DNA of 64,000 nt, from assembly GCA_950097015.1 (NCBI GenBank), contig CATNEN010000007.1, forward strand, positions 3,224,001 to 3,288,000. Direction: 5' to 3'. A program made the translations under genes and the position numbers. This document shows, in pieces, positions 20,293 to 52,464 of the stretch. Numbering within the stretch: the stretch's first letter is position 1; every line of letters starts with the position of its first letter. Under the pieces are notes generated by a model, which was not told the DNA's origin, did no database searches, and saw only the letters and a list, made by a program, of their open reading frames with translations. The stretch is from Macrostomum hystrix. Taxonomy: Eukaryota; Animalia; Platyhelminthes.

Positions 20293-21190
20293 CTCCCAGA
20301 TCCTCATTCTGATTCACTATCCCCAGATCCTCATTCTGATTCACTATCCCCAGATCCTCATTCTGATTCACTATCCCCAGATCCTCATTCTGATTCACTA
20401 TCCTCAGATCCTCATTCTGATTCACTATCCCCAGATCCTCATTCTGATTCACTATCCCCAGATCCTCATTCTGATTCACTATCCCCAGATCCTCATTCTG
20501 ATTTCCTTTCTCCCAGATCCTCATGCTGATTCACTATCCCCAGATCCTCATTCTGATTCACTATCCTCAGATCCTCATTCTGATTCACTATCCCCAGATC
20601 CTCATTCTGATTCACTATCCCCAGATCCTCATTCTGATTCACTATCCCCAGATCCTCATTCTGATTCACTATCCCCAGATCCTTATTCTGATTCACTATC
20701 CCCAGATCCTCATTCTGATTCACTATCCCCAGATCCTCATTCTGATTCACTATCTCCCAGATCCTCATTCTGATTCACTATCCCCAGATCCTCATTCTGA
20801 TTCACTATCCCCAGATCCTCATTCTGATTTCCTTTCTCCCAGATCCTCATGCTGATTCACTATCCCCAGATCCTCATTCTGATTCACTATCCCCAGATCC
20901 TCATTCTGATTCACTATCCCCAGATCCTCATTCTGATTCACTATCCCCAGATCCTCATTCTGATTTCCTTTCTCCCAGATCCTCATGCTGATTCACTATC
21001 CCCAGATCCTCATTCTGATTTCCTTTCTCCCAGATCCTCATGCTGATTCACTATCCCCAGATCCTCATGCTGATTCACTATCCCCAGATCCTCATGCTGA
21101 TTCACTATCCCCAGATCCTCATGCTGATTCACTATCCCCAGATCCTCATGCTGATTCACTATCCCCCAGATCCTCATGCTGATCCCCCAG
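20293..21190. repeat. 27-bp minisatellite (CCCCAGATCCTCATTCTGATTCACTAT)
   Basis: About 0.9 kb array directly upstream of DNLZ; source of the HYPQILILI and DPHSDSLSP ORFs. Confidence 0.97.
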
Positions 21191-21213
21191 ATCTTCTGGG
21201 TCTCTTAGGTTTT

Positions 21214-21828
21214 ATGCAAACCAGTTTTATGCATTTCTTGCATTATGCCGTCACAAATGACTTATCCCAAACTGTGCTCCCTCAGTTTCTTCGAACCGTA
21301 CTTCTACGCTGCCACTCGCGGTGTCAAGCAGCGGCGGCTGCTGCTACTTCCGCTGCCAGCAGACGCACCCTGCTGACCTCAATCGCCAATCTTCCGTCTG
21401 CGTTCCGATGCGACCACCTTCGCCTTCTTCAACCCCCACAAGCACTGTCGCCCTCGACAATAGCCATTCGATCACTTTGCGGCGGTTCAGACAAGTCCCA
21501 TCTGCCTAGCACAATTTCCGACTTGCCCGACGTTATTGACAACGACGCCTGTAGCTCAGAGGGCAAGCGTCAGATGGGCATAGTGTTCACCTGCAAGGTG
21601 TGCAACACTAGACAGGCTAAGAGTTTCTCGCGTCTTGCCTACGAGCGCGGTGTAGTGATAATTCGCTGCGAGGGTTGCAAAAATTTGCACCTGATTGCAG
21701 ATAATCTACACTGGTTTAGCCACGTCAGCGGACGGAATGTGGAACAGATTCTGCGCGAGCGGGGCGAGGAGGTGCGCAGATTGAGCGGCTGCTTGGATCT
21801 GCAACTTGGCAGCACTGAGCGGAACTGA
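21214..21828 (+). CDS. DNLZ: DNL-type zinc finger protein (Hep1/Zim17), mitochondrial Hsp70 escort
   Basis: zf-DNL motif FTCKVCNTR...FSRLAYERGVVIIRCEGCKNLHLIADNL. The start is uncertain: ATG at 21214, or a spliced start at acceptor 21285|21286. Confidence 0.9.
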   Translation: MQTSFMHFLHYAVTNDLSQTVLPQFLRTVLLRCHSRCQAAAAAATSAASRRTLLTSIANLPSAFRCDHLRLLQPPQALSPSTIAIRSLCGGSDKSHLPSTISDLPDVIDNDACSSEGKRQMGIVFTCKVCNTRQAKSFSRLAYERGVVIIRCEGCKNLHLIADNLHWFSHVSGRNVEQILRERGEEVRRLSGCLDLQLGSTERN

Positions 21829-25521: not shown

Positions 25522-25630
25522 GCCGTATGAACGGGCTCTTACTGCGAGGACTCAATTTGTTGCATAAGAAATCGTTACAATACCTATGGTTCAAGTTTAA
25601 ATCGGAGGCTAATTTAGGGCCAAGCCAGTA
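25522..25630 (+). ncRNA. Spliced-leader (SL) RNA-like gene or pseudogene lacking the 5' splice donor
   Basis: CCGTATGAACGGGCTCTTACTGCGAGGACTCAATTTGTTGCATA is 37/44 identical to the Macrostomum SL as I recall it (CCGTAAAGACGGTCTCTTACTGCGAAGACTCAATTTATTGCATG). The CCGT/ACGG stem is preserved; a second hairpin, an Sm-like AATTTAGG and a GGC-CAA-GCC hairpin follow. Confidence 0.7.
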
Positions 25631-26815: not shown

Positions 26816-28204
26816 ATGTACCGCAGCTCACGCAGCGAGGAGGATTTCGAGTCGCTCAGCGAGTCCCTGGTGCGCGAGGCGACCCCGACGGCCCTGGGGC
26901 TGATCGAGCACCTGTACAAGCGCAACCGGGACTCGAAGTTTGCGGAGCCGTCGACGGGCCGCCAGCGCCGGCTGGAGCAGCGGATGCTGGCTTCGCTGTT
27001 GAGCAGCGTGCAGGACCGCAGCGACGAGTCGGTGGAGTTCTGCCAGTTGCTGGCCACGTCCGACAGCTTCATTAGCGGCGTGTTCTGCGACATGTTGAAC
27101 TGCTGGAGCTCGGACTACCTGGCCCGAAAGCTGGGTGACCAGTGCGCAGACCTGATGTTCCAGATGATTACTATCGTGTTCAACTGCCTGTTCAAGAACG
27201 ACAGCTTCGTAAACTCCAACCTGGCCAACTTTGACCTCGTTGGACCGACTCAGCCTCTGTTGAAGTCCCCGGAGTCGGCGCGCTCGCTGCAGGCCCTGCT
27301 GCTTGTGGCCTTCGCATTGGACGAGAGCAAGGCCGACCTGTTCTTGGGAGAGAGTGACATCATCGGGCACCTGGTCGGCGGGCTCAAGGCTTCGCTGAGC
27401 TCCAGCGAGCGCAGCTTCGAGACAGGCAACATGGTGTACAGCCTGCCCGAGCTGGCCAGGTGCACCCAGCGGCTCGCTCTCAACGACGTCAACAAGGGCC
27501 TGTTAATAAAGCTCGGCGTGCTGCCCGCCGTCAAGGCGATGCTGGAGGCCACCGAGTCGCAGGACGTTGGCGCGGGGCTTGAGTTAGCGTTCACGCTGTC
27601 GTTTGAAAAGGACCGTCAGCTCAAGCTGGCCATAGGAGCTGAGATCTGCGACAGCCTCAAGCGCCTGGCCGCCGCCAAGGACTGGGAGATGTCGCAGACG
27701 CTGCAGGGCCTGCTGTTCAACATGGGCGAGAAGTTCACCATGAAGGTGCTGGGGCCCAGCAGCCGGATGTTCGCTTCTGTGGAGGAGTCCACCAATGAAG
27801 ACGAGAAACCAGTAACCGAAAGCAACTATGTGGTGATCAGCTTCGATCCGGAGCAGCTGGAGTTTGCCAAAAAGTTGCGATCTGACCTTGCGGCCTTCGG
27901 CATTAGCATCTGGGACAACATCAGCCGGTCGAACGTCTCGCTACAGGTGATGCTTGAGGCAACGCTGCACTGCAGCGCCTTCATTGTGTGCCTGTCGAGA
28001 CGCTACAAGGAGAACAACTCGTGCCGCATGGAGGCGGAGCACGCGCGCAGTCAGAAGAAGCTGGCGGTGCTGGTTCAAGCCGAGCCGAACTGCAAACCCA
28101 CCGGCTGGCTGACCCTGCTGCTGGCCTCCGGACCGATGGTGCCGATGGGAGGCGACGCCGCCGGAGAGATTTGTCGAAGAATGCGGGCGTCGGATGAGGC
28201 ATAG
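26816..28204 (+). CDS. ARM-repeat plus C-terminal TIR (TIR_2-like) domain protein, intronless
   Basis: ARM-like LALNDVNKGLLIKLGVLPAVKAML...LAFTLSF; TIR motifs VVISF, KLRSDLAAFGISIW, AFIVCLSRRYKENNSCRMEAEHA, PNCKPTGWL. Confidence 0.8.
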   Translation: MYRSSRSEEDFESLSESLVREATPTALGLIEHLYKRNRDSKFAEPSTGRQRRLEQRMLASLLSSVQDRSDESVEFCQLLATSDSFISGVFCDMLNCWSSDYLARKLGDQCADLMFQMITIVFNCLFKNDSFVNSNLANFDLVGPTQPLLKSPESARSLQALLLVAFALDESKADLFLGESDIIGHLVGGLKASLSSSERSFETGNMVYSLPELARCTQRLALNDVNKGLLIKLGVLPAVKAMLEATESQDVGAGLELAFTLSFEKDRQLKLAIGAEICDSLKRLAAAKDWEMSQTLQGLLFNMGEKFTMKVLGPSSRMFASVEESTNEDEKPVTESNYVVISFDPEQLEFAKKLRSDLAAFGISIWDNISRSNVSLQVMLEATLHCSAFIVCLSRRYKENNSCRMEAEHARSQKKLAVLVQAEPNCKPTGWLTLLLASGPMVPMGGDAAGEICRRMRASDEA

Positions 28205-34499: not shown

Positions 34500-36481
34500 G
34501 ATGAATTACCCACCTCTAAATATCCACCTCTGAATACCCACCTCTGAATATTCACCTCTAAATATTCACCTCTGAATACCCACCTCTGAATATTCACCTC
34601 TGAATACCCACCTCTGAATACCCACCTCTGAATACCCACCTCTGAATATTCACCTCTGAATACCCACCTCTGAATACCCACCTCTGAATACCCACCTCTG
34701 AATATTCACCTCTCAATACTCACCTCTGAATACCCACCTCTGAATACCCACCTCTGAATACCCACCTGTAAATACCCACCTCTAAATACCCACCTCTGAA
34801 TACCCACCTCTGAATATTCACCTCTGAATACCCACCTCTGAATACCCACCTCTGAATACTCACCTCTGAATACTCACCTCTGAATACCCACCTCTGAATA
34901 CCCACCTGTAAATACCCACCTCTAAATACCCACCTCTAAATATTCACCACTGAATACCCACCTGTAAATACCCACCTCTAAATACCCACCTCTGAATATT
35001 CCCCTGTGAATACCCACCTCTAAATATTCACCTCTGAATATACCCACCTCTAAATATTCACCTCTGAATACCCACCTCTGAATATTCACCTCTGAATACC
35101 CACCTCTGAATATTCACCTCTGAATACCCACCTCTAAATATTCACCTCTGAATACCCACCTCTGAATATTCACCTCTGAATACCCACCTCTGAATACCCA
35201 CCTCTGAATACCCACCTGTGAATATTCACCTCTAAATATTCACCTCTGAATACCCACCTCTTAATATTCACCTCTGAATACCCACCTCTGAATACCCACC
35301 TCTGAATATTCACCTCTGAATACCCACCTCTGAATACCCACCTCTGAATATTCACCTCTGAATACCCACCTCTAAATACCCACCTCTGAATATTCACCTC
35401 TGAATACCCACCTCTGAATACCCACCTCTGAATATTCACCTCTGAATACCCACCTCTGAATACCCACCTCTGAATACCCACCTCTGAATACCCACCTCTA
35501 AATATTCACCTCTGAATACCCACCTCTAAATATTCACCTCTGAATACCCACCTCTGAATATTCACCTCTGAATACCCACCTCTGAATATTCACCTCTGAA
35601 TACCCACCTCTTAATATTCACCTCTGAATACCCACCTCTGAATATCCACCTCTGAATACCCACCTCTTAATATTCACCTCTGAATACCCACCTCTGAATA
35701 TTCACCTCTGAATACCCACCTCTTAATATCCACCTCTGAATACCCACCTCTGAATATTCACCTCTGAATACCCACCTCTAAATACCCACCTCTAAATATT
35801 CACCTCTGAATACCCACCTCTAAATACCCACCTCTGAATATTCACCTCTGAATACCCACCTCTTAATATTCACCTCTGAATACCCACCTCTTAATATTCA
35901 CCTCTGAATACCCACCTCTGAATATTCACCTCTGAATACCCACCTCTTAATATTCACCTCTGAATACCCACCTCTTAATATTCACCTCTGAATACCCACC
36001 TCTGAATATTCACCTCTGAATACCCACCTCTTAATATTCACCTCTGAATACCCACCTCTGAATATCCACCTCTGAATACCCACCTCTAAATATTCACCTC
36101 TGAATACCCACCTCTGAATATTCACCTCTGAATACCCACCTCTGAATACCCACCTCTGAATACCCACCTCTGAATACCCACCTCTTAATATCCACCTCTG
36201 AATACCCACCTCTTAATATTCACCTCTGAATACCCACCTCTGAATACCCACCTCTGAATACCCACCTCTGAATATTCACCTCTGAATACCCACCTCTAAA
36301 TACCCACCTCTAAATATTCACCTCTGAATACCCACCTCTAAATACCCACCTCTAAATATTCACCTCTGAATACCCACCTCTAAATACCCATCTGTAAATA
36401 CCCACCTCTAAGTAACTACCCTAAATGCCTATCTCTAAATATCCTCGTGTAAATGCTCACCTCTGAATATGTACCTTTAAA
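34500..36481. repeat. 14-bp minisatellite (TGAATACCCACCTC / TGAATATTCACCTC), interrupted at its degenerate edge by the Helitron
   Basis: About 2 kb array; degenerate units resume at 50989 after the Helitron 3' end. Confidence 0.96.
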
Positions 36482-37488
36482 TCTAATACCTAAATCTGTG
36501 TATGTTTCTGCCTATGTCTGTCTGTCTGTCTGTCTGTCTGTCCGTATGTTTCACGTTTTAAGCTGAATGCCTGGACCATTTTCAACCGGATTTGTTGAAT
36601 TCGATTCGAAATTTTCAGCCGGTGGTGTGGCTTAAAATTGGTTGAATTCTGTTTATATTAAGACTGTTAAATTGACAGAAAACTGTATTTTTTGCAAAGT
36701 TCATTCAAGTTCAAACATGCTCGGCTGCTCTGGCTTGCTAAAAGTGTTCATTTCATTAGATTGCATCAGCAGTGCCCAAGTTCAATTTACTCTCTTACCC
36801 TCTTTTCTGCATAGGCTAAAAAATCCATGCGCATCAATGTGCGTGTGGACCTTTCCTGCCGGCCAAATGAATTGCCCAGTGCTAAATGTGCATATCGTGT
36901 GTATTTGTGGGTCCCGCTTACCCTGGCTGGCTGAATTATTCATTGCTAGCCTAGACGCACTAAAATGTACACTTCTTAGCTAGCTAGCAGTGAGAGATTC
37001 AAACATAAATATGCAGATTTTTGTGCCCTCACATCAACGGTCGGATAGCCAGCTGGTAGGCACTTAGGCTAGGTTAGGCTAGGATTCCCCGGCTCGAGTC
37101 CCCAGTGCGGCTGGCAAATTAATTGTCTTAATGGATGCCACCTGCTACTTTCAGTAACAGTCAGTGTGCTAAGTAACCTTTTTTCTTTTGTATGTTTCAC
37201 ATCTGTTTCACGTTTTTAAGCTGAATGCTAAATGAGATTATCGCTTACATTTGCGATTGGCTGCTGCATTCAATACAGAAATTTCTGTATTGACAGGGTA
37301 CAGTTTGTACAGGTACAAAGGCGAATGTACAAATCAGGAGTACATATGCAACAGATATTGATTTAAAGGTATGAGAGCTGCATGGTTTGTTTCTTCAAAT
37401 TTATTCACCCATCGCTTTGTCTATAAAAAGCATTTCGTATATCTGAACACTTTTATCGGATTTTTGTCTTCATTGTCTAAGCAAAGTA

Positions 37489-40400
37489 ATGCCTAAGCGC
37501 AAGAGCTTTCTCCAAAAGAGCCGCCAAGCGAAGCAGCATCGCCGTGCTGAAACAGACGATGAAAGAGAAGAGCGTCTTCGGAAGAATCGTGAGTATGCAC
37601 GTAGGCGTCGAGAGGAGGAAAATGAATCGAGTCGAGTGGCTCGTCTTCATGATGACAGGCATCGCACTGCCGAGCGACGCGCTGCTGAATCGTCACCTGA
37701 AAGACTGTCTCGTCTTCATGATGACAGGCATCGCACTGCCGAGCGACGCGCTGCTGAATCGTCACCTGAAAGACTGTCTCGTCTTCATGATGACAGGCAT
37801 CGCACTGCCGAGCGACGCGCTGCTGAATCGTCACCTGAAAGACTGTCTCGTCTTCATGATGACAGGCAGCGCACTGCCGAGCGACGCGCTGCTGAATCAT
37901 CACCTGAAAGACTGTCTCGTCTTCATGATGACAGGCATCGCACTGCCGAGCGACGCGCTGCTGAATCGTCACCTGAAAGACTGTCTCGTCTTCATGATGA
38001 CAGGCAGCGCACTGCCGAGCGACGCGCTGCTGAATCATCACCTGAAAGACTGTCTCGTCTTCATGATGACAGGCATCGCACTGCCGAGCGACGCGCTGCT
38101 GAATCGTCACCTGAAAGACAAAGCCGGTTGGCAGACCTTAGAACTCGAGATTCTAACAACCGAGCTAATGAGTCCCTTGCTGCAAGAGATAAGCGGTTAG
38201 AAAAGGCCAGAACACGGGACGCTGAGCGACGACTAAACGAATCTTTAGGCGTCAGGGACAATCGGCTTAAAAATTCGAAAAGTCGAACCGCTGAACGAAG
38301 GGCATCTGAATCTGCATCAGAACGCCAATCTCGCTTGGATCGCATGCGGATTTCCAGTGTAACTCGGCGAACGCACGTAGATTCACCCAGCAGCTTGTGA
38401 GTAAAAAAGGCTATGAGAAATAACAAACGCTGTTTAGATGGGGGCTTTTAATTAAAACTTTAGGTACATACTTGCTCCTGATATTCCTACTTACAGTAGT
38501 CACACAGGGGGTGTCGGTGTTGCGAATCTGTGAGGCTTTGAACTGCGAGCTGTGAACGGGAAACGCATTGAAGGCGGGACATGCACACGCAAATAAAGAA
38601 TTAGTATAATGGATATCGATCAACGAATATAATTTGTATTTGAATTTGGCAATAGGTATACTCTCCAACATCGATTCTCGCTTGCCTGATATCCACGCAA
38701 TTCTATGTGTAATTATATATTTTGTAATGCCTTCAAAATTATATCTTTTCCCATCCGATTGAAAGTGTAGTTAAATATCGATTGTATTAAAAAATCCTGC
38801 TTCTTTATATTCCCAACTACAGGCCTCTCGTCACAAGCCACGCTTCACCAACGCGATCGTTGCTAAACTTTGCTGTGCATAATGTACCTGGTGACGGCGA
38901 CTGCTTCTTTCACGCCGTCTGTGACCAACTTAAAAATACGGAGCTGAGCACAGATGCTTTCACCTTGCGACAGGAGCTCACTCGTCGCGCACAGCCTTAT
39001 TTACTGAATTTAGAAGCAAGCGGATTTATTGTGCAAGGTTCAAGTGCTTCACTTTTGAGAGCTTCAGGCTCGCAAGGAGTTGCAGTCCCCGATGAAATAG
39101 TACCGCTTCTAAGTCAATGCTTCAATATAGACGTTACTATTTTTCAAATTGATGGACGCGTACTGCAGCATTTCACATCGCCAGTTCATCCGCCAGTCTC
39201 TGTTGTGCGGTTGCTGTTGCACAATGAGCACTACCAGTCGCTGCGAAATTCCTTGCCAGATTCGCAAAGGTCTGCGCAGGACATCGGATCCGCTTCTGCA
39301 AGTGAGAGCTCCGTGATGAGTCCAGTCAAGAAGCGCCGGCTGCCTGCTGCTTTGCCTCCAACTTTGCCTCCAACTGCAGGACAGCATCGCGACAACACTG
39401 ACGGGCCTACCTTGAGTTGCGAATCTTTTGTTGACATTGAGAAATCGAGAGCTGCTGATGAAACTTTGACTAGGGATTCAACTTGCACTGAACAATCTGT
39501 GTAAGTGTGCCGACTATTATATATGAATAACATTTACAACTGCAATGGTTATAATGCAGAAAAATCCATCAGCACAGAAACTTTTGATGCACATTCAATT
39601 CTTCCTTTGGTGATGCTGTGTGGATGGTTTATGGCTAAATCTACTACCTGTAGTACTTGATCGCAGCTTGAAAAAATTATCTTAATTCCATGAACGTCCG
39701 GTAACGGCGACTCAAAGATTAATGCTTATTCGATTGCAGATCAGCGGAGGCGGCAACGCATTCGGCTGGTCGGATGGAATACCCATGCACAATGTGCGGC
39801 GCTCTGCGTTGGAAGCTGGAGGTGGCCGGACTCTGCTGCACTGGTGGACAGGTGAAGCTGGAGCAGCGGCGCATACCAGAGGAGCTGCGACGGCTCTATC
39901 AGGGCCAGCATGAAAAAAGCCGGCTCTTTTTAAATAACATCCGGAGGTTCAATGCAGCACTACACATGACATCTTTTGGTGTTAACAAGCGTGATCTTCC
40001 TCTAGGCTCAATGAATTTGATCATCAATGGACAAATCCATCACAAAATTGGCAGCCTTCTTCCTATTGAGGGCAGGACGGCACAATTTTGCCAGATTTTC
40101 TTCTGTGACTCTGAACTGGATACACGAATGGCAATGGTGAACGGTTTAGATCGAAACATTCTAGAGCTGCTGCAGAACATGCTGCATCGGGAAAATTCGT
40201 ATGTACGCAGCTTCAAAGCTGCCATCGAGCGAATCACAGAGAATCCCGATCTGCAGAGTGCATCTTTGGTTATCCGGGCAGATAGGAGACCCACTGGCGA
40301 GCATGTGAGGTAAGTTGGGTTTACTTTAAACTGATTTAAGCACTGAATGATGATATTTGAGCTTAGTTTTCTTTTTTAGAGAAATTTTCAGAAAGGGAGT

Positions 40401-43400
40401 TGTTCTTTTAATTAGGCTTAAAACTTTGTTATAGACGGCACATCGGCCAAACCACACTAGATTATTCTTTTTCGAAACACGGTAACTGGAATATGTTATG
40501 TACTATTTATAGTAATATATGAGGAATCAATTAATAAGAGACAAGAAACATAACTGTCTGTGACAAAGACTTGTTGAAGACGGAAATCAAAATCACACAT
40601 TGAGTTCTCAGTTAGTTGAAGAATAAATATGTCCTTTTTAAAACTGGTTGATTAGATTTTAATTAGACTGAATGAATGTCTACTTTATCAATTTCCTAGG
40701 CGATTCAACCTACCAAGTGTTAGTGAAGTCGCAGTGTTGTTTGACGCATTGGAGGACGATACCGAAGGTGCTGCAGGCAAGCGGGATGTCATTGTGCATC
40801 TGCGATCGGGCAGGATACAACGCATTGACGAGACACACCGCTCCTACGACCCATTGGAGTATGTACTCTTTCACCCATGCGGAGAAGATGGCTGGCACAT
40901 TGGTCTGACGATGGCTAACAATCGCAAGCTGACACCCAGAGCAATGTACTCACATCAGCTCATGATTCGTCCCGGCGTCTTCAATGCCCTTCACTACGGC
41001 AAGCGGCTCTTCCAACAATATATTGTCGATCAGGCAGCAAAGATAGAAGCTGAGCGACTAAATTATTTGAAGACGCACCAAAATGACCTCCGCTCTGAGA
41101 CTTACAGCGGCCTGAAAGATGCGCTGGTTGCCTCCGATGTTGACCCAGATTGGGCCAGCAAAGTCGGGAACCGTGTCATACTGACCTCCAGCTTTGTCGG
41201 CGGTCCGCGCTATCGGAGGGAGCGTCAACAGGACGCCATGGCATATGTGCAGCGCTTCGGAAGGCCGGATCTTTTCATAACAATGACTGCGAATCCTGCA
41301 TGGGAAGAAATCACACAGGAGCTGCTGCCTGGACAAAGCCCGGTTGATAGACCAGACCTCACAATGCGCGTCTTTGACTTAAAGCGAAAGGCTCTGCTGG
41401 ATTGCCTACGGACTGCTTTCGGCACTCCGGTCGCACATGTCTGCTCGCTTGAGTTTCAGAAACGAGGTGAGTTTATATTTAGTTTATGCAAGAACTACAA
41501 ACACTATCGACCACCAGCGAAGTATTGTCAGCCTGTCTCTGTCAGCCTGTCTCTGTCAGCCTGTCTCTGTCAGCCTGTCTCTGTCAGCCTGTCTCTGTCA
41601 GCCTGTCTCTGTCAGCCTGTCTCTGTCAGCCTGCCTCTTTAGGCCCTTGATTCACTTTATTCTGACTACATTTCTTCTACTAGCTGAGCATGTTGTGTTG
41701 TGAGATGCGATTATTCAGATAAAGTAGGATTCGTTCAATCGATTTCAATTTATTTATTTTTACTACTCTCTGTGAGATTTTTTCAGTCGACTTATCAAGA
41801 TTAGAATTCGCGACTTTCGCAACGATCTCTCTGCAGGTCTGCCACATGTTCATATACTTCTGTGGCTGGCACAGATGGATAAGATCACACCTGACCGCTA
41901 CGATGATGTCGTGTGCGCGGAAATCCCGAGCGCTGTCGATGATCCGGAGCTGCACAAGCTGGTTGTTGATAACATGATGCATGGACCATGTGGTGAAATA
42001 AACCCGCGATGTGTTTGCATGATAAACGGAGCTTGCAGCAAAAAATTCCCAAAGGACTACCAACTTGCGTCTGTTGTGAACGACTCGGGATTCCCATTTT
42101 ATCGTCGGAGATCTGCAACAATGGGAGGTCACGTAGCCAAGAAGTATCTGCGAGGCAAGGAAGTGATCATGGACAACAGGTAAATACTCATTTTGGAATT
42201 ATAGAAAAAGTTAGCAAAAATTGACATGTACAAATTAGACTTTCTTTAAAAATACATCATCTGGGATTTAATATGCCTTGCACTGATTTAAAACTTCGGT
42301 TCGAGAGGCGTTTTAGAGGATTCATTTTAATGTAGCAGTAATGATGAAAATTTTCATGTACAACAAACTACTTTTTTTCTTTCCATCTATGCAGTTTAAT
42401 TTGTGTGGTACAGGACTTCGATTTAAATTACCAGTATTAGATGTATCTAATCCTCATTTAGTAACAATGCTTTGCTTTATATTTATCGTTGAAGAGAAAG
42501 AGTAATTGTTGATTGAAGTGAAAATGTATCTGATATTCATAGTGATAATTACTAATACTTACTTTACTTTTGCTCTTACTTTTTAGATTCGTTGTCCCCT
42601 ACAATGCGCACCTGTTGCGCCTATTTCGGTGCCACTTAAACGTCGAGATTTGCGCGACCGTAAGGGCAATTAAATATGTAGTTAAATATCTCCACAAGGG
42701 ATCCGATATGGCAACTGTTGAGCTGACTACGGAGCAGCGTGAAGAAATAAAGTGGAATGAAATCGCTGCTTACCTGTTAACTCGGTATCTGGGCCCACAT
42801 GAAGGTGTTCAAATAATTCTCGGAATGAGCGTTCATAGCCGCTATCCGCCTGTTGTTCAGTTGTGCGTCCATCTCCCTGGTAAAAACCGAGTTATCTTTT
42901 CTGCGGCAACAGCTGAAATGCAAGCATCAAGACCACCTCGCAGCATGCTAACAGCGTTTTTTGAACTTTGTCGCAGAGATGATTTCGCCCGCACTCTGTT
43001 GTACACAGATGTTCCGCGATACTATATCTGGCAAGCTGACCGAAAGGAATGGCAGAGGACCAAGATTGGAGCACCTGTGGATGGCTACGATGGCGTTCGT
43101 CAGCGAGATACCATTGGCCGCATGTACAATGTCAGCCCGAGAGCTCGAGATGTATTTTATCTACGACTAGCCTTGCTGCGTATTCGGGGACCGGTCAGCT
43201 ATGAATCTCTGCGAACAGTAGACGGAATTCTGTACACTGATTTCTTTGAGGCTTGCAAGGCTCTTGGCATGCTGGAAGATGATAATCATTTCCGTCTCTG
43301 CATGGAAGAGGCTGAACAGACTCAGATGCCAGCTGCTCTTCGAAGTCTATTCTCGGTCATTTTGATCCACGGCAATCCTACAGACGCGCAACATTTGTGG

Positions 43401-45206
43401 TCCCGCTTCCAGTTGTCAATGGGTGAGGATTTTGCCCATCGCGAGTCAGCTGATGAAGCTTGGATAGTGAACCGTGTTCTGCAAGATTTGACCGTGCGAT
43501 TGAGCCTTATGGGCGGCAGTTTGTCTCAATTTGGTTTGCCAGAACCACTTCAAATTGCTGAGCAGGAAGCCGAGTTCGACGCGCAGGAGTTGAGCACGTT
43601 TGTTGAGCAGCGTGAGCACCAGCTGACAGACGAGCAGCAAAAAATCTACAAGGCAGTGCTGGACAGTTTGCAGAGTGGAGGAGGTCTGCACTTCATTGAC
43701 TCGCCAGGAGGAACTGGAAAGAGTTTTCTACTGGAACTTCTGCTTGCTCACGTGCGATCGCGTGGTGAACTTGCTTTGGCTGTTGCAACCACAGGAATTG
43801 CGGCAACTCTGCTCCCTGGCGGCCGGACTGCCCACTCGGCATTTAAAATTTCCCCTTCGGTTTTGAATGAAAGCTGCGGGCATTGCGACATAAAAAAGCA
43901 GAGTGCCCTAGCCGAAAATTTGCGAAACACCCGACTTGTTGTATGGGATGAAGCAGCAATGGTGCATCGCAAGATTCTAGAAACAGTCGAACGCAGTTTG
44001 AGAGATATAATAGCTGACAAGCCTTTCGGTGGACTGACGTTTGTAATGGCTGGAGATTTTCGACAATTGCTGCCTGTTATAAAGGGCGGCACAGCTGCAA
44101 ACGCAATTCAGGCGTGCATAAATAAGAGTCCACTTTGGAGCGGCTTTCTGCAGCATCGGCTAACCCGCAACATGCGACTTCAAGCAGACACCGATTCTGA
44201 AGCTTCGCACTACGCCGAGTTTCTGCTGCAGGTTAGTTTCTAATATTTAACTTGTATTTAGTGTTTCGATTAGATTAGGGTTTGAAATATGATAAAAGGT
44301 GCGCCTGTTGATAGTTGAGATTTTATTGGTTTTAAAAATATCGTAGTGTTTATCTTAGATTAATAACTGATCTCGAAAAACTGGCAGCTAGCACTTCACA
44401 TATTTTCCTCAATTCACATGCATTCATAGGTCGGTGAGGGACGACTAAAGCAGGACGATCAAGGCTATGTGGAACTCCCATCGGAGATTTGCATGCCAAT
44501 GGGATCTGACACGATGCAGCTGATTCGATATGTTTTTCCCAGCTTCAACAATGCTGAGACGCGCGATCAACAGTTTGAATCCAGAGCAATTCTGGCACCG
44601 CACAATCGAACGGTGAACGAAATCAACGCTCAATGCCTGGTTATGTTTCCAGGAAAGGCTGTGGAATACCTTTCAATTGACAGCATCCCAGATGACGAAG
44701 AAGCGGCGATTCAATTTCCTGTTGAGGCACTGAACAGCTTAGAAGCACAGGCACTTCCGCCGCACCGACTGGAACTTAAAGTCGGAGTGCCTATCATGCT
44801 GCTGAGGAATTTAGATGCACCACGTCTCTGCAACGGAACCAGGCTAATCATCACGAAGCTAGAAAAGAATGTTTTGGTAGCTCGAATCGCTTCTGGAGCT
44901 TTCAAAGGCGCACCTGTTCTGCTACCAAGAATTCCATTGACGCCGAATGCTGAGGATTTGCCTGTAAAATTCCGCAGACTGCAGTTTCCTGTTCGACTTT
45001 GCTTTGCAATCACAATTCATAAGAGCCAAGGTCAGAGCCTGGATTCCTTTGGCGTTCACTTGGGCCAGTCGTGTTTTCAACATGGCCAATTGTATGTTGC
45101 GCTGAGTCGAGCACGTGACCCAAGGCATGTGCGTGTCCTTCACGGCCAGCAGACGCAGAATATTGTCCTGCAACAAGTTTTTTCAACGGCCTGCGATTGT
45201 TCGTGA
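37489..45206 (+). CDS. Helitron RepHel transposase, about 1895 aa: STPR-like repeats, OTU, Zn finger, HUH Rep, PIF1-family helicase
   Basis: Exons 37489-38396, 38823-39500, 39740-40309, 40700-41466, 41837-42179, 42587-44231, 44430-45206 total 5688 nt with matching phases. Motifs: PDLFITMTANP, EFQKRGLPHVHILLW, KYVVKYLHKG, Walker A SPGGTGKS, VWDEAAM, GDFRQLLPV, QFPVRLCFAITIHKSQGQS, HGQLYVALSR. Confidence 0.95.
41525..41635. repeat. 14-bp tandem repeat (GTCAGCCTGTCTCT) in RepHel intron 4
   Basis: About 8 visible copies. Confidence 0.9.
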
Positions 45207-46751
45207 TACTCACATTTTATGCCTGTAAAACAGTCTTTTGACAAACAGTTTAGATACAATCTGCTTTACTCTATTATCAACAGGTCAATTTTGAAATTTA
45301 GCTAAATTCGAAGTTGAAATCCGCACATTACAATAGGCCAAACGTTGCAATAAACCCCATGTTAAAATAAACTCCATGTTGCGATATCCGCAGGTTGCAA
45401 TAATCCACAGCTTAAAATAATACAATGTGCAATGTTCACCCTCGAGGTTGAAGCAATACTATAGTCCTTATATTTGAAAAATCCATAGCAATAATCCCTG
45501 GTGCAATAATCCACCGTTTACAATAATCTCCACGATGCAATAATCCCAGGTTGTAATTCAGTCAGCCTGTTCTAAACGCTACGATTCGTCAAAAGAGATA
45601 TTTATCTGATGATTGTGCTGTTTATTATTCATATTTCACATGCAAATTATTAGAAGTGATTGAAGGTACATCATAATTCTCTTGTTCCAATTGTGAATCT
45701 AAAAGTGGAAAATTTGAAACACCTGTTCTATTCAACGTTCTCTTGCTGCGCTGTTGCACTGCCGCAAGTGCAAGAATTTCCGCAACTCCTGTGTCTTTTG
45801 ACCGTCAAAAGCGAAGATGCGTTGCTTTTTCTGCTGATTATTTTTTGCTTCCTAATTTACTGTGAGCTTGTCGCCCAGTCGCTTTCTTTCAACTGCTGCA
45901 ACATTTTGATGACAGCCACACAGTAACTAGAAAGTAGACTGTCGAATAAATTCCCAGGATGTAATGCTGGTATCCAGGTTGCAATAATCCCTGGTTTCAG
46001 ATTACTTTAACGGGCTTGGACAGAGTGGACAGGAAACTGGTCTGCAAACTGGTTTGCTAATTTGTCATTAGCGTGCAGTAAATGTCCATGAGCACGCTGT
46101 CAGTTGGTTTGTCAACGGGGCTGATAGTTTGTATTCAAACGGATTAATTGTTTGTCTTTCAACGGGATATGTTAATTGATTTATCAAAATGCTCTTAGTT
46201 GTTTAGCAAACATTAAATGGTCTGTGAATGTGTGTTGGCTTATACCACAGAATATCAATTGATATTCTGTGGCTTATACCTCAAATGGATTGTAAATTGG
46301 TCTGTTAATGCTAATAAATAAACTGTTGTTAATTAGCCGGTCTGTAATGGAGCTGTGATTTAATGCCATCAAGAAGTAAATCAATCTGCCTACGGGCTGT
46401 GACAATTGCTCAACGGGCTGTATATTAGTCTACAAAAATCCGCAGCTTGGAATCAGAAGGGTACATCATACACTATGTACATCTGCGTCACCTCAACGAT
46501 CGTCTGCTATTGACTGCTGAGTAACTCACTTTTTAAGAAGCTATGACTTTAATGTCCACCTATACCACCGTCACAAAACAAATTCGCGTGGTCACACGAT
46601 CACCACATCCCTTGTACATCGGTCGCGTGATTTGATGGCTCATTGGATGGCAGTTTGAAAAACTTTAAGAATCAATATATAATAGGTGGAAACCTCTTGA
46701 CTTTACGATATTGAAATTCAGCTGACTGCATTTGTCATACACGTAGACAAA

Positions 46752-48556
46752 ATGAAGATTTTGGAGATAAAATCCTGCGGAAGGCTGAGCATTCCAGTGC
46801 TGGGTAAGGTTTTCCTTCGAAATGAGGTGAGCTACGAGCTACATGTCTATATACTTAGATATATAGTCTCATAATTACGTCGACATCTTGCTGCTCATAC
46901 TCGCATATGAACCTGCAGATATTACATATTCTCCACCTCGCTAAATCAATACTAGAACAAATAACTTACTTGTAGTAGTGACTGAACTTATTCTTGAACA
47001 GATTCGAGATTACACAAGCCGACGAGGCAACGGACAGCTATTTAGCATTCTTCTGGCGGACGAATCGGCCGAAATCAAGGTCTGCTTCTTTGGCCGCGAG
47101 CTGGCCGAGCGCTGGAACTTGTGCGCCGTGGGCAGGGCGATACAGGTGTCAGGTGGAGAGGCAAAAGTAGCGGACACTCGCTTTAACGTAGCCAACAACA
47201 TTTTCGAAATAATATTGAATATTGACAACGGCGGCCTCGTTGAACGAGCTGATAACATTATCTGCAGCCCTCAATTCAAGTTTCGGCTCATATCCGAGCT
47301 GCCGACCGTCGGGTCCAGCGGGTAAGATTCACGTTGTAACGACATTGTACTTTTCAACTGACTAAAGTATTAGAGCGATTTTTGGCAAGGAGCTCTTAAG
47401 TAGAAGGACGTTATATTCAAGCATGGGAAACTATTCAAATCCGATTTTTAGAAAGATGCATATTGAATATTTATATATTTACACTTTCGAGGCTGATTTT
47501 CCTCGATTCGATTATGATCGACGTAAGGAAGCATTAAATATTCAAATATAGTGAATTTTTCATGTACACATAAAATCGAAGTTCAATCTAGAAACGTTTC
47601 CAGACGCAAAAAGCATATTTCTCAAATTTACAGTTTCTTATCCTTAAGTTTGAACTACACTACTAATAATAGCACAATAAGGGTTAAATAAAAAATGACG
47701 GAAATGCATAGCAAATACGGGGACACTGCAATGGGGGGTTCATTGGAAGTCAGAGTTTGAGGCAATGGCCTAATTGACACTCGCGGCTATTGCCTCAAAC
47801 TCTGACTTCCTATGAGCATCATTGCTTAAAATTTCCATCAATTCTATGCAATGGCCGGCCATTGCCATTGCCATTGCCAAGAAGTGAAATTTTAGGCAAT
47901 GTCTGTTTGACACAAGAAGAACTGGACCTGTATGTATTTACAAGATAAATATAGTACTTTCTCAATTTCCTGCCAGAGCTATCGTCGACGTTCTTGGCGT
48001 CGTAATTTCACAGGATGGTCCAACGGAAGTGCCAACAAGGAAGGGCCCTTGCGCAAAGAGCACAATTGTATTGGCAGATGCAACAAACACGGCTGTCACC
48101 TGCACGTTCTGGGGACAAAGCGCGGCCCAGGTAGCGTCATGGTCAGCGAATGACGTTTTAGCAATTAAAGGCGCGCGGACAAGCGATTATGGATCGATGT
48201 CCCTCAATTGCAGCTCCGCTCTGTGCATGATGGAGCCTGACATCCACCAGAATGTCGAAGTCGACCGTCTGCGGACCTGGATCACTCAGCGCGATGACAG
48301 ACTCACGCCTGCTGCCATTGAATTTGTTGCTGCCGCTGCCATCCGCGAGAAAGCAGATGAAATTTTTTTAGAAATACCATCTGCGGTGAAGCGGGTGCGC
48401 ATTCGCCGCGGAAGTTTGGAGGTAAGATAAATTTAAATGTCGATTTATCTGCGGGACTGGATTTGTGCGACTGTTTTTCTTACTCGCTTATTATCCAAAT
48501 TACAATTTCAGAAATCTGTGTCTTTCGAGGAGGCGGGTCTGAGCTCCTCCCAGTGA
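46752..48556 (+). CDS. Helitron-borne RPA70-like ssDNA-binding protein (two OB folds, DBD-A and DBD-B like)
   Basis: IRDYTSRRGNGQLFSILLADESAEIKVCFF resembles RPA70 [69 protein letters not shown] and LRTW follow the OB-B pattern. Phase-consistent exons 46752-46803, 46976-47321, 47977-48421, 48512-48556. Confidence 0.85.
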
Positions 48557-49196
48557 GTAATTTAAATTATGGCTTTGGCCAATCGGCTCATTAGTGGTTT
48601 GATTGATGAATCAATGCATATGGAAACTACAAATTGATAATCATATGATTGAAATTTGCTCTTAAAAGTTTACATACTTATAGTTTTCTTAGGCATGTGC
48701 TGACCACTGATTTGATTGAGCTACATAAATATATATCTGAAATATAACTTCATGAATATAATGAGTTATTTATAAAAAATATATAAGCAAACTGTGTATA
48801 TGGGTACTACAGGAAGTGAACACAGGTAGTCTTTGCAATCTTAAGCTCATGAAAAACCGAAAACTTATCCTTGCAGGCAAAGCGAAGCATCATTTGTGTC
48901 GTCAGGCTACTAAGAGGAATTTTGAAAATTCCAAATGAGAAATGCAGCATCGCAGCAAAAGGAGAAATCGCATTAAGGCCCGATGAATGAAGCACAATGA
49001 AGAAAAATTGAAAATGGACTAGAATTATTTTGTGCATTAACATTTAAAGCTTTTTTCTATGAAAAGAGAAGTTAAATTTTGTTCCACAAGCTAACATCTT
49101 AAAATATACCTTGCAGACTATAGAACAGATTTACAAAAAGTCTATTGGATGAAAGGCTGTTTGTGCTAGATTGTTTTTAATTATTTTAAAAGTAAC

Positions 49197-49470
49197 TATA
49201 TTCTCAGCAACAGTCAAAAGTGACACCTCTAGCAAGAGAACACTTTTCTCTCTCCTCTCACTTGTCTGCAAGTGATGCAACTTGCACCATGGCATAAGCT
49301 AAGGTTGAAGGAAAATGGGTAAATTGCAAGCATTGGTGTGGAAATAAACATTTTTTAGAATTGAAATCCCCAATGCATGAAGTAAGTTATATCACTCTTG
49401 ACTGAAGTGATATAGAGAAAATTTTTCTCCTTCATTAGATGTGTCACTTTTGACTGTTGCTAAGTATATA
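49197..49470. mobile_element. MITE nested in the Helitron 3' region (TA-ended, Tc1/mariner-like)
   Basis: 35-bp inverted ends (49197-49231 and 49436-49470) with 3 mismatches, ending in TATA. Confidence 0.75.
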
Positions 49471-50960
49471 CCTACACTTATTTAACAACTTAACACAGTA
49501 AACATACTTATTACTGTTTTCTTGCTAATAAGAAAAAACAGACATTAAAACTTGAAGACCGACATTGTTATACATTTTTTTAGTCCTGTACAAATCATGT
49601 ACAAATGGGTATGAAAATATTACATTCAATATAGCAGAATAAAGCTTGGAAACTTGCCTTTTAAACATTGGGAAGTCTGGATTACTAGCTAAATAGACAT
49701 AAAAAGAGTTTATCATCTATGACTCCAGCCATGTAGGAATATTATATCAATTTCAATATAATACAATACCTATAATAAGCTATGTAACACTGTATGGTAA
49801 AAATATGCAACACAATGCTTGGTTTATGAAATAATTTTCAGCTGGGCCTAATTCATATTATATAAATGATCTAAACATGGTAGCTGATATAGGCTATAGA
49901 TCTTATATAGTATTTTTAGCTTCTATATAATTATAATAAAGGGAAATAAACTTGATATGTAAACAAGAACAGCATTTTTAATGCTAGCAATGCATATCAA
50001 GAATGAAATTAATAGGCCTACAAAGTACAAACTAGGAAAAACTGATTCACATAATAAAAAATATATAAATCAACCCTAAAGTAAAAAAGCTTTATTTCAC
50101 AAAAGTTCATTGAACTTTTCATAATCAAAATAATGCTTACAACAATACAACTAGAACAAACAAAATTGCAACAAATTGGGTACTATTGATGATTTTGCAA
50201 AGGCTTTACCAATGAAAGAACAATATTGCTATGACTTGGCAATTGTACTAGCCAGTCAGCCATAAAGAGGCCTTATAAGCAATTCTTGCTAATCATTGTT
50301 TGGTTATTGCACTTTAGATTTTGCTGTTCAAGTATTGGAGTTAGGGATGAGTCTATAACATTTGATTGCCACAATTTGACTTCCACAATTTGACTGCAGT
50401 AAATTTGACTGCTAACAATTTGACTGCCATCAATTTGACTGCAAGCAACATTTGACTGCCAGCAACTTTTGACAGCAAATTAATAAATATCAAGTCTTCT
50501 GCCAATGCTAGACCAAGTCAAAAACAATTTCCAAGTCAATTGCCATCGGCAATAATACAGCCCAATACTCAATAGATGACCGTGAATGAAAAATGAGTGT
50601 TCCTAGAAAACAACCAACATAAAAAATCACGAAAGTGTATATCAACACATACAATAAAATAAAGTAGCCATCTGCATAAAAAATGTATATCTAAGCTTAC
50701 ATACAATTGGGTAATATCAGACGTCAGCACCAGCAACAAATGCTATACACTATATATTTTCTTATAACCTAGAATTTCGTTTATAACGCAGAATTCATCC
50801 GGATTTTAGCTGAACTGATGAAGGCGGGCTATCCAGAAAATAGACCTTGATGATCTGCTTGATATTGATCCGAGGGATCTGCTAACATGCTGTTAACAGC
50901 TGCAATTATTGCTTCATCTGCTATTTCATCTGGAATTGGAATATTGTCTTCTTAATTAAC

Positions 50961-50988
50961 GACCCGCGAAGCGGGTCTCAATGGCTAG
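50961..50988 (+). other. Helitron 3' terminal hairpin and CTAG end
   Basis: 7-bp GC-rich stem with GAA loop, 7 nt upstream of CTAG; canonical Helitron terminus. Confidence 0.92.
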
Positions 50989-51744
50989 TACCCACCTCTA
51001 AATGTGGTACTCTAAATGCCTACCTATAAAGGCGCAAAACTGGACAAATCTCTTAAGAAGCAATCGCACAAAAAGGATTCCCTAAATGCAAAGTTACGTC
51101 TCGCAAAGCAAAGATCACTAATCATTATACAAGTTGTACTTGTGTCAAGCTCCGTTTGTATTTTATGAAGCCGTTTCACTGCTATTTGCACTTTAAGCGT
51201 ACTGTAAGTTGCATCGCGCTATTCGCTCCTAATACCTTACTGGCATAAGGAATTTTCTGCTAGAACCAATGAAAGCATATCATTACAAGGCACAAGCAAT
51301 AAAGCAGTTTGGCTGAGTAAACTACTATAAGTAGTTTATAAGCTCGTACCCAAACCGTTTATTTGTTAGTTGTTAGTCGGAAATGGCGTAAAAAATATTT
51401 GGTTTCTTTGAATTCTACATGTCATTTCTAAGAAAAGTATAAAAATCTACTTATGTTTCTACTGAGTCAAGGGCTCAGTGTTTCTCTATACCCCTATAGC
51501 CTTGTCTTCAATTTAATGTGGCCCAGTCACTTATTCAAGCTCATCTTAGGACTCTGGTGTGAGAGTCGGACACGCCACCGACTATAAACGTTATTCAGGT
51601 AAGTCAGGATCTTTGAATACTGTCGGTATTAATGTGGATTTTTCCTTGGCAAGGCTTCAATTTCTAACATCGGAAGTCCGTGCTGGCAACAGCTGATGGC
51701 TGTTAAATGTGGGAGATATAGGGAAAAAACGTCTACAGATGGGA

Positions 51745-52464
51745 TCACAAAAGTTTGCAACTGCTCGCCTCCCCACCGCTGCCGCCGACACCAAATCCTG
51801 CGAAACGTGACGACGGTGTGGGCGGCGGCGCCGGCTGTTTGAGCGCCGCGGCAGCCGTGACCCTCAGCAGGTGGCGGAGTCCGCGCCCGGTCCTCGCCGA
51901 CGTCTCGACGTAGCCGACTGCGCCGGCTCCTTCGGCTAGTTCAACTCCGCGCTTCGAATCAATTGGCCGACGATGGCGATGATCGCACCGCTGTCGGAGC
52001 TTCAGCAGGGCCTCTGCGTCGGTGCGCAGGTCGGCCATTGTGCCGACTAGGATCAGCGGAATGCCGTGCTCGCAAGAGGCTGCCACAAGCTCCGGCAGCC
52101 AGATGTTCTCTAAGCTGGCCAGGCTGTCGGGCCGCATCACGGAGAAGCAGAGCCACAGCGCGTGGGCACCGCTGTAGGAGGCAGCTCGAACTCTGTCGTG
52201 GCCCTCCTGGCCGCTGGTGTCAACCAAGTGCAGCTCCACCGACTGCGGCACCTCGCCGATGTCCTCGGAGTCAGCCGGCGGCGGCACCGGCACAACGAAG
52301 TCGTCGCAGCAGACGGCGAAAGAGGCAACAGCTGCGGCGGCCTGGTTGGCGGCGGCCGTTGTCGGGCCGTCTCGAAGGCTAATGAGCAGCGACGTCTTGC
52401 AGGAGTCGATGTCGCCGACTGCGACACATTTCAAACGCAGCGGCGGCAGGGGCTGCGGCTGCAT
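51745..52464 (-). CDS. Atypical Rho-family small GTPase, intronless, CAAX box CKLL
   Basis: LKCVAVGD, LVDTSGQEGHDRVR..SY, LCFSV..PDSL, WLPEL, PLILVGT.ADLR, YVETSA. P-loop, switch I and G4 are degenerate. Confidence 0.85.
   Translation of the reverse strand: MQPQPLPPLRLKCVAVGDIDSCKTSLLISLRDGPTTAAANQAAAAVASFAVCCDDFVVPVPPPADSEDIGEVPQSVELHLVDTSGQEGHDRVRAASYSGAHALWLCFSVMRPDSLASLENIWLPELVAASCEHGIPLILVGTMADLRTDAEALLKLRQRCDHRHRRPIDSKRGVELAEGAGAVGYVETSARTGRGLRHLLRVTAAAALKQPAPPPTPSSRFAGFGVGGSGGEASSCKLL

Follow-up and report, generated by a model that had tools for sequence, protein, structure and literature searches.

Structure of the locus

A Helitron of 14,507 bp lies at positions 36482–50988, on the forward (+) strand, of a 64,000-nucleotide stretch of Macrostomum hystrix DNA (assembly GCA_950097015.1, contig CATNEN010000007.1, positions 3,224,001–3,288,000; hereafter ‘the window’). 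It is a canonical Helitron (HLE1), a known kind of element. It sits within a host satellite and carries two genes, one for a RepHel transposase and, downstream, one for a protein resembling RPA70. The element and its immediate surroundings comprise:

36482–50988, + strand: whole Helitron (HLE1), TC...CTAG, in an A|T site, 14,507 bp
34502–36481, + strand: left part of the host 14-bp satellite, about 141 units, of which the last six or so (~6) are degenerate
50989–51030, + strand: last ~3 degenerate satellite units, in phase, right of the Helitron
36482–36545, + strand: 5′ terminus, with TC at the start and a (TGTC)7 tract after it
50961–50977, + strand: 3′ terminator hairpin, 17 nt, 7-bp GC stem and 3-nt loop, 11 nt before the end (z = −3.1)
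50985–50988, + strand: 3′ terminal CTAG

Insertion site and termini

The left junction reads ...CTTTAAA|TCTAATACC and the right junction ...GGCTAG|TACCCAC. When 36482–50988 was removed in silico the satellite resumed in phase with 0 indels, and the four 14-mers spanning the join matched the closest common satellite unit at 12, 13, 8 and 12 of 14 positions. Tandem Repeats Finder, run on the rejoined empty site, returned one continuous 14-bp array, 144 copies long and with 0% indels over the junction. The four contiguous 14-mers described in the initial annotation are borne out. The right flank fitted the expected satellite phase at 27/35 bases, a score reached by none of the 117,798 non-satellite 35-mers of the window. 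The Helitron landed about three units short of the array's ragged right end.

Satellite periodicity sets the length of the insertion (14,507 bp) and its boundary to within one T, since deletion of 36483–50989 yields an identical empty site. The periodicity had been taken to fix an A|T target without target-site duplication; it is compatible with one but equally with the one-T shift, and it is the TC/CTAG rule for Helitron ends that decides in favour of A|T. The ends themselves are as first annotated, with TC at 36482–36483, and the hairpin and CTAG at the positions given above. A 3′ CTRR preceded at about 11 nt by a GC hairpin of 16–20 nt is characteristic of HLE1, and the only strong instance of hairpin-CTAG-T in the window is the 3′ end of this Helitron. 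The satellite phase documents the empty site neatly, but adds nothing new on mechanism. The possibility that the satellite belongs to an older element flanking the Helitron was considered and rejected, as neither inverted nor direct ends lie beyond the array.

A chimeric assembly, in which Helitron and satellite were joined artefactually, is extremely improbable. The left junction does adjoin a 2-kb repeat, and the read check, which used contigs of public sequencing runs over 6 kb including the last 37 bases of RepHel, the RPA-like gene and the 3′ end, covers the right junction only. Against this, one unbranched 5,204-nt contig from run X1 (a deep DNA run, whose contigs drop rare variants), an independent assembly, extends from 47742 through the CTAG and into about 1.9 kb of flank (flank judged by length), bridging the right junction, and the satellite phase is preserved across 14.5 kb.

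That the Helitron targets satellite DNA is also very unlikely, even though it lies in a satellite and its 5′ end loosely resembles the satellite unit. Tandem repeats hold 20% of the window minus the Helitron and 23% of its AT steps, so landing in the satellite requires no targeting. AT occurs in every satellite unit, and relatives in Macrostomum lignano adjoin other Helitrons instead.

The RepHel transposase gene

Database searches and structure prediction were run exon by exon, and the exons were joined for stop checks and for local tblastn against relatives' loci. RepHel comprises seven predicted exons, with GT-AG introns and matching phases, that join into 1,895 amino acids with a single terminal stop, in agreement with the initial annotation's description of the gene as intact. 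Exon-wise Pfam searches detected STPR, OTU (weak), Helitron_like_N, PIF1 and Pif1_2B.

37489–38396, + strand: exon 1, basic N-terminus and STPR 23-aa repeats (PF21107, E 5e-19)
38823–39500, + strand: exon 2, OTU-fold protease, phase 2-2, frame-symmetric (Cys330/His439 of the model)
39740–40309, + strand: exon 3, zinc-finger-like Cys motifs (CxxC ... CC), read by eye, without Pfam match
40700–41466, + strand: exon 4, Helitron_like_N, Rep motif 1 and first half of motif 2 (PF14214, E 2e-50)
41837–42179, + strand: exon 5, GLPHVH HUH motif (His978/His980)
42587–44231, + strand: exon 6, Y2 pair Tyr1119/Tyr1123, Pif1 helicase, Walker A Lys1467 and Walker B (Helraiser 7LCC, E 4e-82)
44430–45206, + strand: exon 7, Pif1 2B/2A, arginine finger Arg1864 and stop, without endonuclease domain

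The STPR tract consists of seven 69-bp repeats (37640–38119). The remainder has the HLE1 arrangement of an HUH-Y2 Rep fused to a Pif1 SF1B helicase, and its closest solved structure is the bat transposase Helraiser (E 4e-82 and 5e-47). Six catalytic residues (the HUH pair, Y727, Y731, K1068 and R1457) are required for Helraiser transposition (PMC4778049). RepHel keeps 6/6: the latter four align to conserved RepHel residues, and the HUH pair is supplied by GLPHVH. Neither exon 3 nor exon 7 gave any record when its exact protein was looked up in public assemblies.

The predicted exon 2 encodes, in frame within RepHel, an OTU-fold protease with intact Cys and His. By Pfam alone the OTU domain falls under the cut-off, but its structure model (pLDDT 95) matched OTUD3 in Foldseek (E 5e-8, TM 0.77), and also DUBA. 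A D-G-x-C Cys loop and an H-Y His loop are present, and are kept in relatives. A profile search with this domain recovered OTU proteases, a result that is not independent because the profile contains plain OTUs. The deubiquitinase module named in the initial annotation is thus present as a fold with its Cys and His in place; deubiquitinase activity would be expected from that fold.

The RPA-like gene and transcription

46752–49154, + strand: RPA70-like gene, 305 aa, two OB folds, start codon predicted
46752–46826, 47002–47321, 47977–48421, 48512–48552 and 48877–49154, + strand: its exons, with the stop at 48911–48913

Transcripts of the downstream gene were found in run X3. This run is labelled as another organism and was classed automatically as DNA; it was read as RNA because four GT-AG joints and a poly-A end are present. 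These joints, with poly-A at 49154, yield the open frame of 305 amino acids, and the gene, previously annotated as intact, is therefore open over five exons, spliced and polyadenylated.

Its product has tandem OB folds corresponding to DBD-A and DBD-B, with the aromatics that stack on single-stranded DNA. The second matches DBD-B of human RPA70 (E 2e-12), with the Trp and aromatic retained, and the first is a weak Pfam OB match. Beyond a short tail there is nothing more, the N-terminal OB-F and C-terminal zinc-binding DBD-C being absent, and the gene is RPA70-like rather than a full RPA70. The suggestion that the element carries its own helicase and single-stranded DNA-binding modules holds as far as the Pif1 and OB domains; coating of single strands by the RPA-like protein is a prediction from its fold. 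A word-based homologue search with an RPA exon gave no match at E 1e-5, and is silent on longer kin. A third small gene between or beside these two, of the zinc-knuckle type, was sought and rejected, since neither a frame with CCHC, RGG or polyQ nor spliced RNA occurred there.

There are signs of transcription for the helicase part of RepHel as well. A 3,978-nt contig of run X3 runs from upstream of 45170 to 46759; its length would place the start at 42783 or, with intron 6 spliced out, at 42585. Contigs of this run continue gapless from the RepHel coding end over 1.5 kb into RPA exon 1, and cannot separate RepHel-RPA read-through from overlapping untranslated regions. About 15% of Macrostomum genes are in operons (PMC8629364). 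One might therefore picture a working animal Helitron in which RepHel and RPA form one read-through RNA, split by spliced-leader trans-splicing, and in which the in-frame OTU is a needed anti-ubiquitin helper. We regard this as unlikely: the sole hint of a read-through RNA is the unbroken contigs, which overlapping untranslated regions fit equally well, and no spliced-leader end was seen on the RNA-like contigs of run X3. The contig graph of this run forks at 46759 into the normal path, entering RPA exon 1, and a minor branch (depth 2) that reaches 46907 by way of 12 other letters and may be an allele or second copy without most of RPA exon 1.

Relationship to known Helitrons

GLPH in Rep motif 2 is diagnostic of Helitrons as against Helentrons (PMC4067079). 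The element was assigned to the former because GLPH is present and the endonuclease domain absent. Helentrons (HLE2) resemble it in that they often carry OTU and RPA; however, in these the RPA gene is upstream, and here it is downstream. An HLE2 identity was rejected on several further grounds: the protein ends after Pif1, with no Pfam match to an AP endonuclease; the motif is GLPH and not GSPH; and there are neither subterminal inverted repeats nor a T|T target, but TC/CTAG ends at A|T.

The best-characterised comparison is Helraiser/Helibat1, an HLE1 element of bats (PDB 7LCC; PMC4778049, PMC5876387). It has the same TC/CTAG ends, hairpin 11 nt from the end and A|T site, and the same Zn-HUH-Y2-Pif1 transposase with all tested catalytic residues in common. 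Unlike Helraiser, the Macrostomum Helitron has introns, an in-frame OTU exon, a seven-unit STPR tract and a separate RPA-like gene, and, where Helraiser is a reconstruction, it is a natural copy, known here from its sequence. Plant Helitrons with RPA-like ORFs (PMC4067079) share the canonical ends and the separate, intron-containing RPA-like gene; the host here is an animal, though, and RepHel does not group with plant RepHels.

None of the extra domains is new to the group. The HELIANO survey had already found canonical Helitrons with STPR, with OTU upstream and with RPA downstream, the same domains in the same positions as here (PMC11417382). In that survey the extra domains lie in ORFs separate from RepHel, whereas in the Macrostomum element OTU and STPR are predicted to splice in frame. 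The in-frame OTU fusion, and the occurrence of OTU and RPA together in an animal HLE1, are small additions to that picture.

Relatives in Macrostomum

The best named protein matches were from Macrostomum lignano, at 50–54%. In a midpoint-rooted tree of the helicase exon and 26 chosen relatives, with no Helentron rows, RepHel grouped with M. lignano RepHels (99/99), separate from the RepHels of plants and of other animals. The closest relative, Logan locus L001, shared 72–75% identity and had intron positions in common. Between the two, synonymous sites were saturated and dN was 0.18 over 1,165 codons, indicating strong protein constraint. Two further Logan loci (L005 and L006) have the same layout, STPR-OTU-RepHel with RPA downstream.

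RepHel elements of M. lignano (L002–L004, L012–L013) belong to the same clade as the Helitron, and L012/L013 carry STPR and OTU. These copies differ in lacking RPA, in being multi-copy at about 99% identity and in forming head-to-tail trains, while the element at 36482–50988 stands alone. The OTU-bearing relative, which ends in hairpin-CTAG, was found at two M. lignano loci (L012 and L013) that differ in their 3′ flanks, and another relative, without OTU and RPA, was present in three copies. Because these relatives occupy two loci and three copies, respectively, the lineage is mobile and can shed both passengers; having spread without them, such relatives make OTU and RPA dispensable in the M. 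lignano lineage.

At the two loci (L012:8763–17741 and L013:8694–17790) an OTU-RepHel Helitron of about 9 kb, without an RPA gene, is joined CTAG|TC to neighbouring Helitrons. Separately, contig L006 (1–120) starts beside a TCTAAT start resembling that of the 36482 Helitron, and a short GACAGAAAACTGTA motif, common to L006:1–120 and the window near 36672, is possibly a conserved 5′ subterminal signal.

Copy number, age and activity

With its ends, open frames and catalytic residues, the element is, as the initial annotation proposed, a complete canonical Helitron with autonomous coding capacity, and it is apparently intact and expressed, and probably low-copy. The reading that we favour, and consider likely, is of a structurally complete Helitron, canonical (HLE1) and belonging to a Macrostomum lineage, which is probably competent and low-copy and whose current movement is unsupported. 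Its non-coding parts contain two inserts:

47728–47850, strand not assigned: strong palindromic repeat with 31-nt arms, in RPA intron 2
49187–49480, strand not assigned: decayed insert resembling a miniature inverted-repeat transposable element, with inverted ends of about 45 nt (84%), in the 3′ non-coding part

Several observations weigh against competence or recent movement. The 5,204-nt contig of run X1 crosses the CTAG unbroken, which means that at comparable depth this sample contains neither a second such 3′ end nor an empty allele. Across the contigs of this run no other 3′ end was found at ≥90% identity, no branch occurred at CTAG and no empty allele was seen, nor was there a CTAG-TC circle junction among the loose ends listed. 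The X1 copy of the same insertion differs by 13 substitutions and two indels in 6 kb (~0.25%), so the insertion is not brand new. Most of these differences are common to run X2, and some may be errors in the window assembly; three fall inside the RPA frame, one silent and two missense. The decayed inserts in the non-coding parts, together with the intron palindrome, suggest some residence time. The read-based check of RepHel coding extends over its last 37 bases only. Finally, the M. lignano relatives described above spread without RPA, and one also without OTU.

The initial annotation had presented the Helitron as a candidate active element, for which near-identical copies sharing its termini and circular CTAG-TC junctions should be sought. 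The X1 contigs, which supplied no sibling 3′ ends, empty site or circle junction, lend no support to current activity. A currently active master element, one that like wheat Feng8 drives itself or non-autonomous partners, is accordingly a possibility to which we give a minor share of belief. The intact frames and ends, and the presence of RNA over both genes, would fit such an element, and in wheat one intact copy drives a family (PMC13286980). In addition, X1 contig depth was 348 over the RepHel interior (43127–47765) against 240 over the 3′ part and flank at equal GC, an excess that may be a partial second copy; depth over the final bins derives from the 5,204-nt contig alone. What tells against an active master is the absence from the X1 contigs, in which rare somatic events could be dropped, of any other such 3′ terminus or CTAG branch. 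No second copy or derivative of the Helitron was found within the 64-kb window.

An apparently single 3′ end, common to samples, in an expressed element with clean coding parts and decayed non-coding inserts could also describe a copy that no longer moves and that the host retains, or is domesticating, for its helicase, RPA-like or OTU activity. Domesticated copies usually lose their termini, hairpin and target-site integrity. Here neither the two termini nor the hairpin nor the A|T site shows any flaw, the samples diverge by only 0.25%, and protein constraint is expected in any transposing lineage, which makes domestication decidedly improbable.

Proposed mechanism

For the favoured reading, of a structurally complete and probably competent Helitron, the steps of transposition may be proposed by analogy with known Helitrons. 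The RepHel HUH-Y2 site would nick the plus strand at the TC end, as in Helraiser (PMC4778049, PMC5876387), and the Pif1 domain would peel the nicked strand away, host synthesis restoring the donor. The 3′ hairpin and CTAG would terminate strand displacement, and a circle would then form and join into an A|T step without duplication. To judge from their folds, the RPA-like protein might coat the displaced single strand and the OTU might act as an optional helper that strips ubiquitin from RepHel or chromatin; both roles, single-strand coat and ubiquitin remover, have been proposed before in the literature. The present copy would have landed at one of many AT steps near the ragged satellite end.

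Few Helitrons have been shown to move: the reconstructed Helraiser, wheat Feng8 and a Pleurotus family. An intact, expressed natural copy with OTU and RPA, having close relatives that lack one or both, is a fair subject for studying the function of these modules in transposition.

Other features of the element and its neighbourhood

Sequences related to the 47728–47850 palindrome occur elsewhere in runs X1 and X3, and it is probably a small mobile element. Perfect palindromes of 28 bp (46245–46272) and 24 bp (37270–37293) lie upstream of the RPA-like and RepHel start codons, respectively, and are possible promoter elements. A degenerate 15-bp repeat at 50360–50478 has relatives on other contigs, and run X2 lacks 22 bp there. 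Rfam gave no match.

About 750 bp from the 3′ end of the Helitron lies an intronless ORF for a Rho-like small GTPase (Pfam Ras; 51745–52464, − strand) with a CaaX-like end. Other host ORFs in the window encode TIR_2 (26816–28204, +), MORN (198–1337, +) and zf-DNL (21040–21828, +) domains. The sequence at 25522–25630 is near to the M. lignano spliced leader (PMC8629364), with no Rfam match, and ends in ...GCATAAG, where the leader would have GCATG followed by a GT donor.

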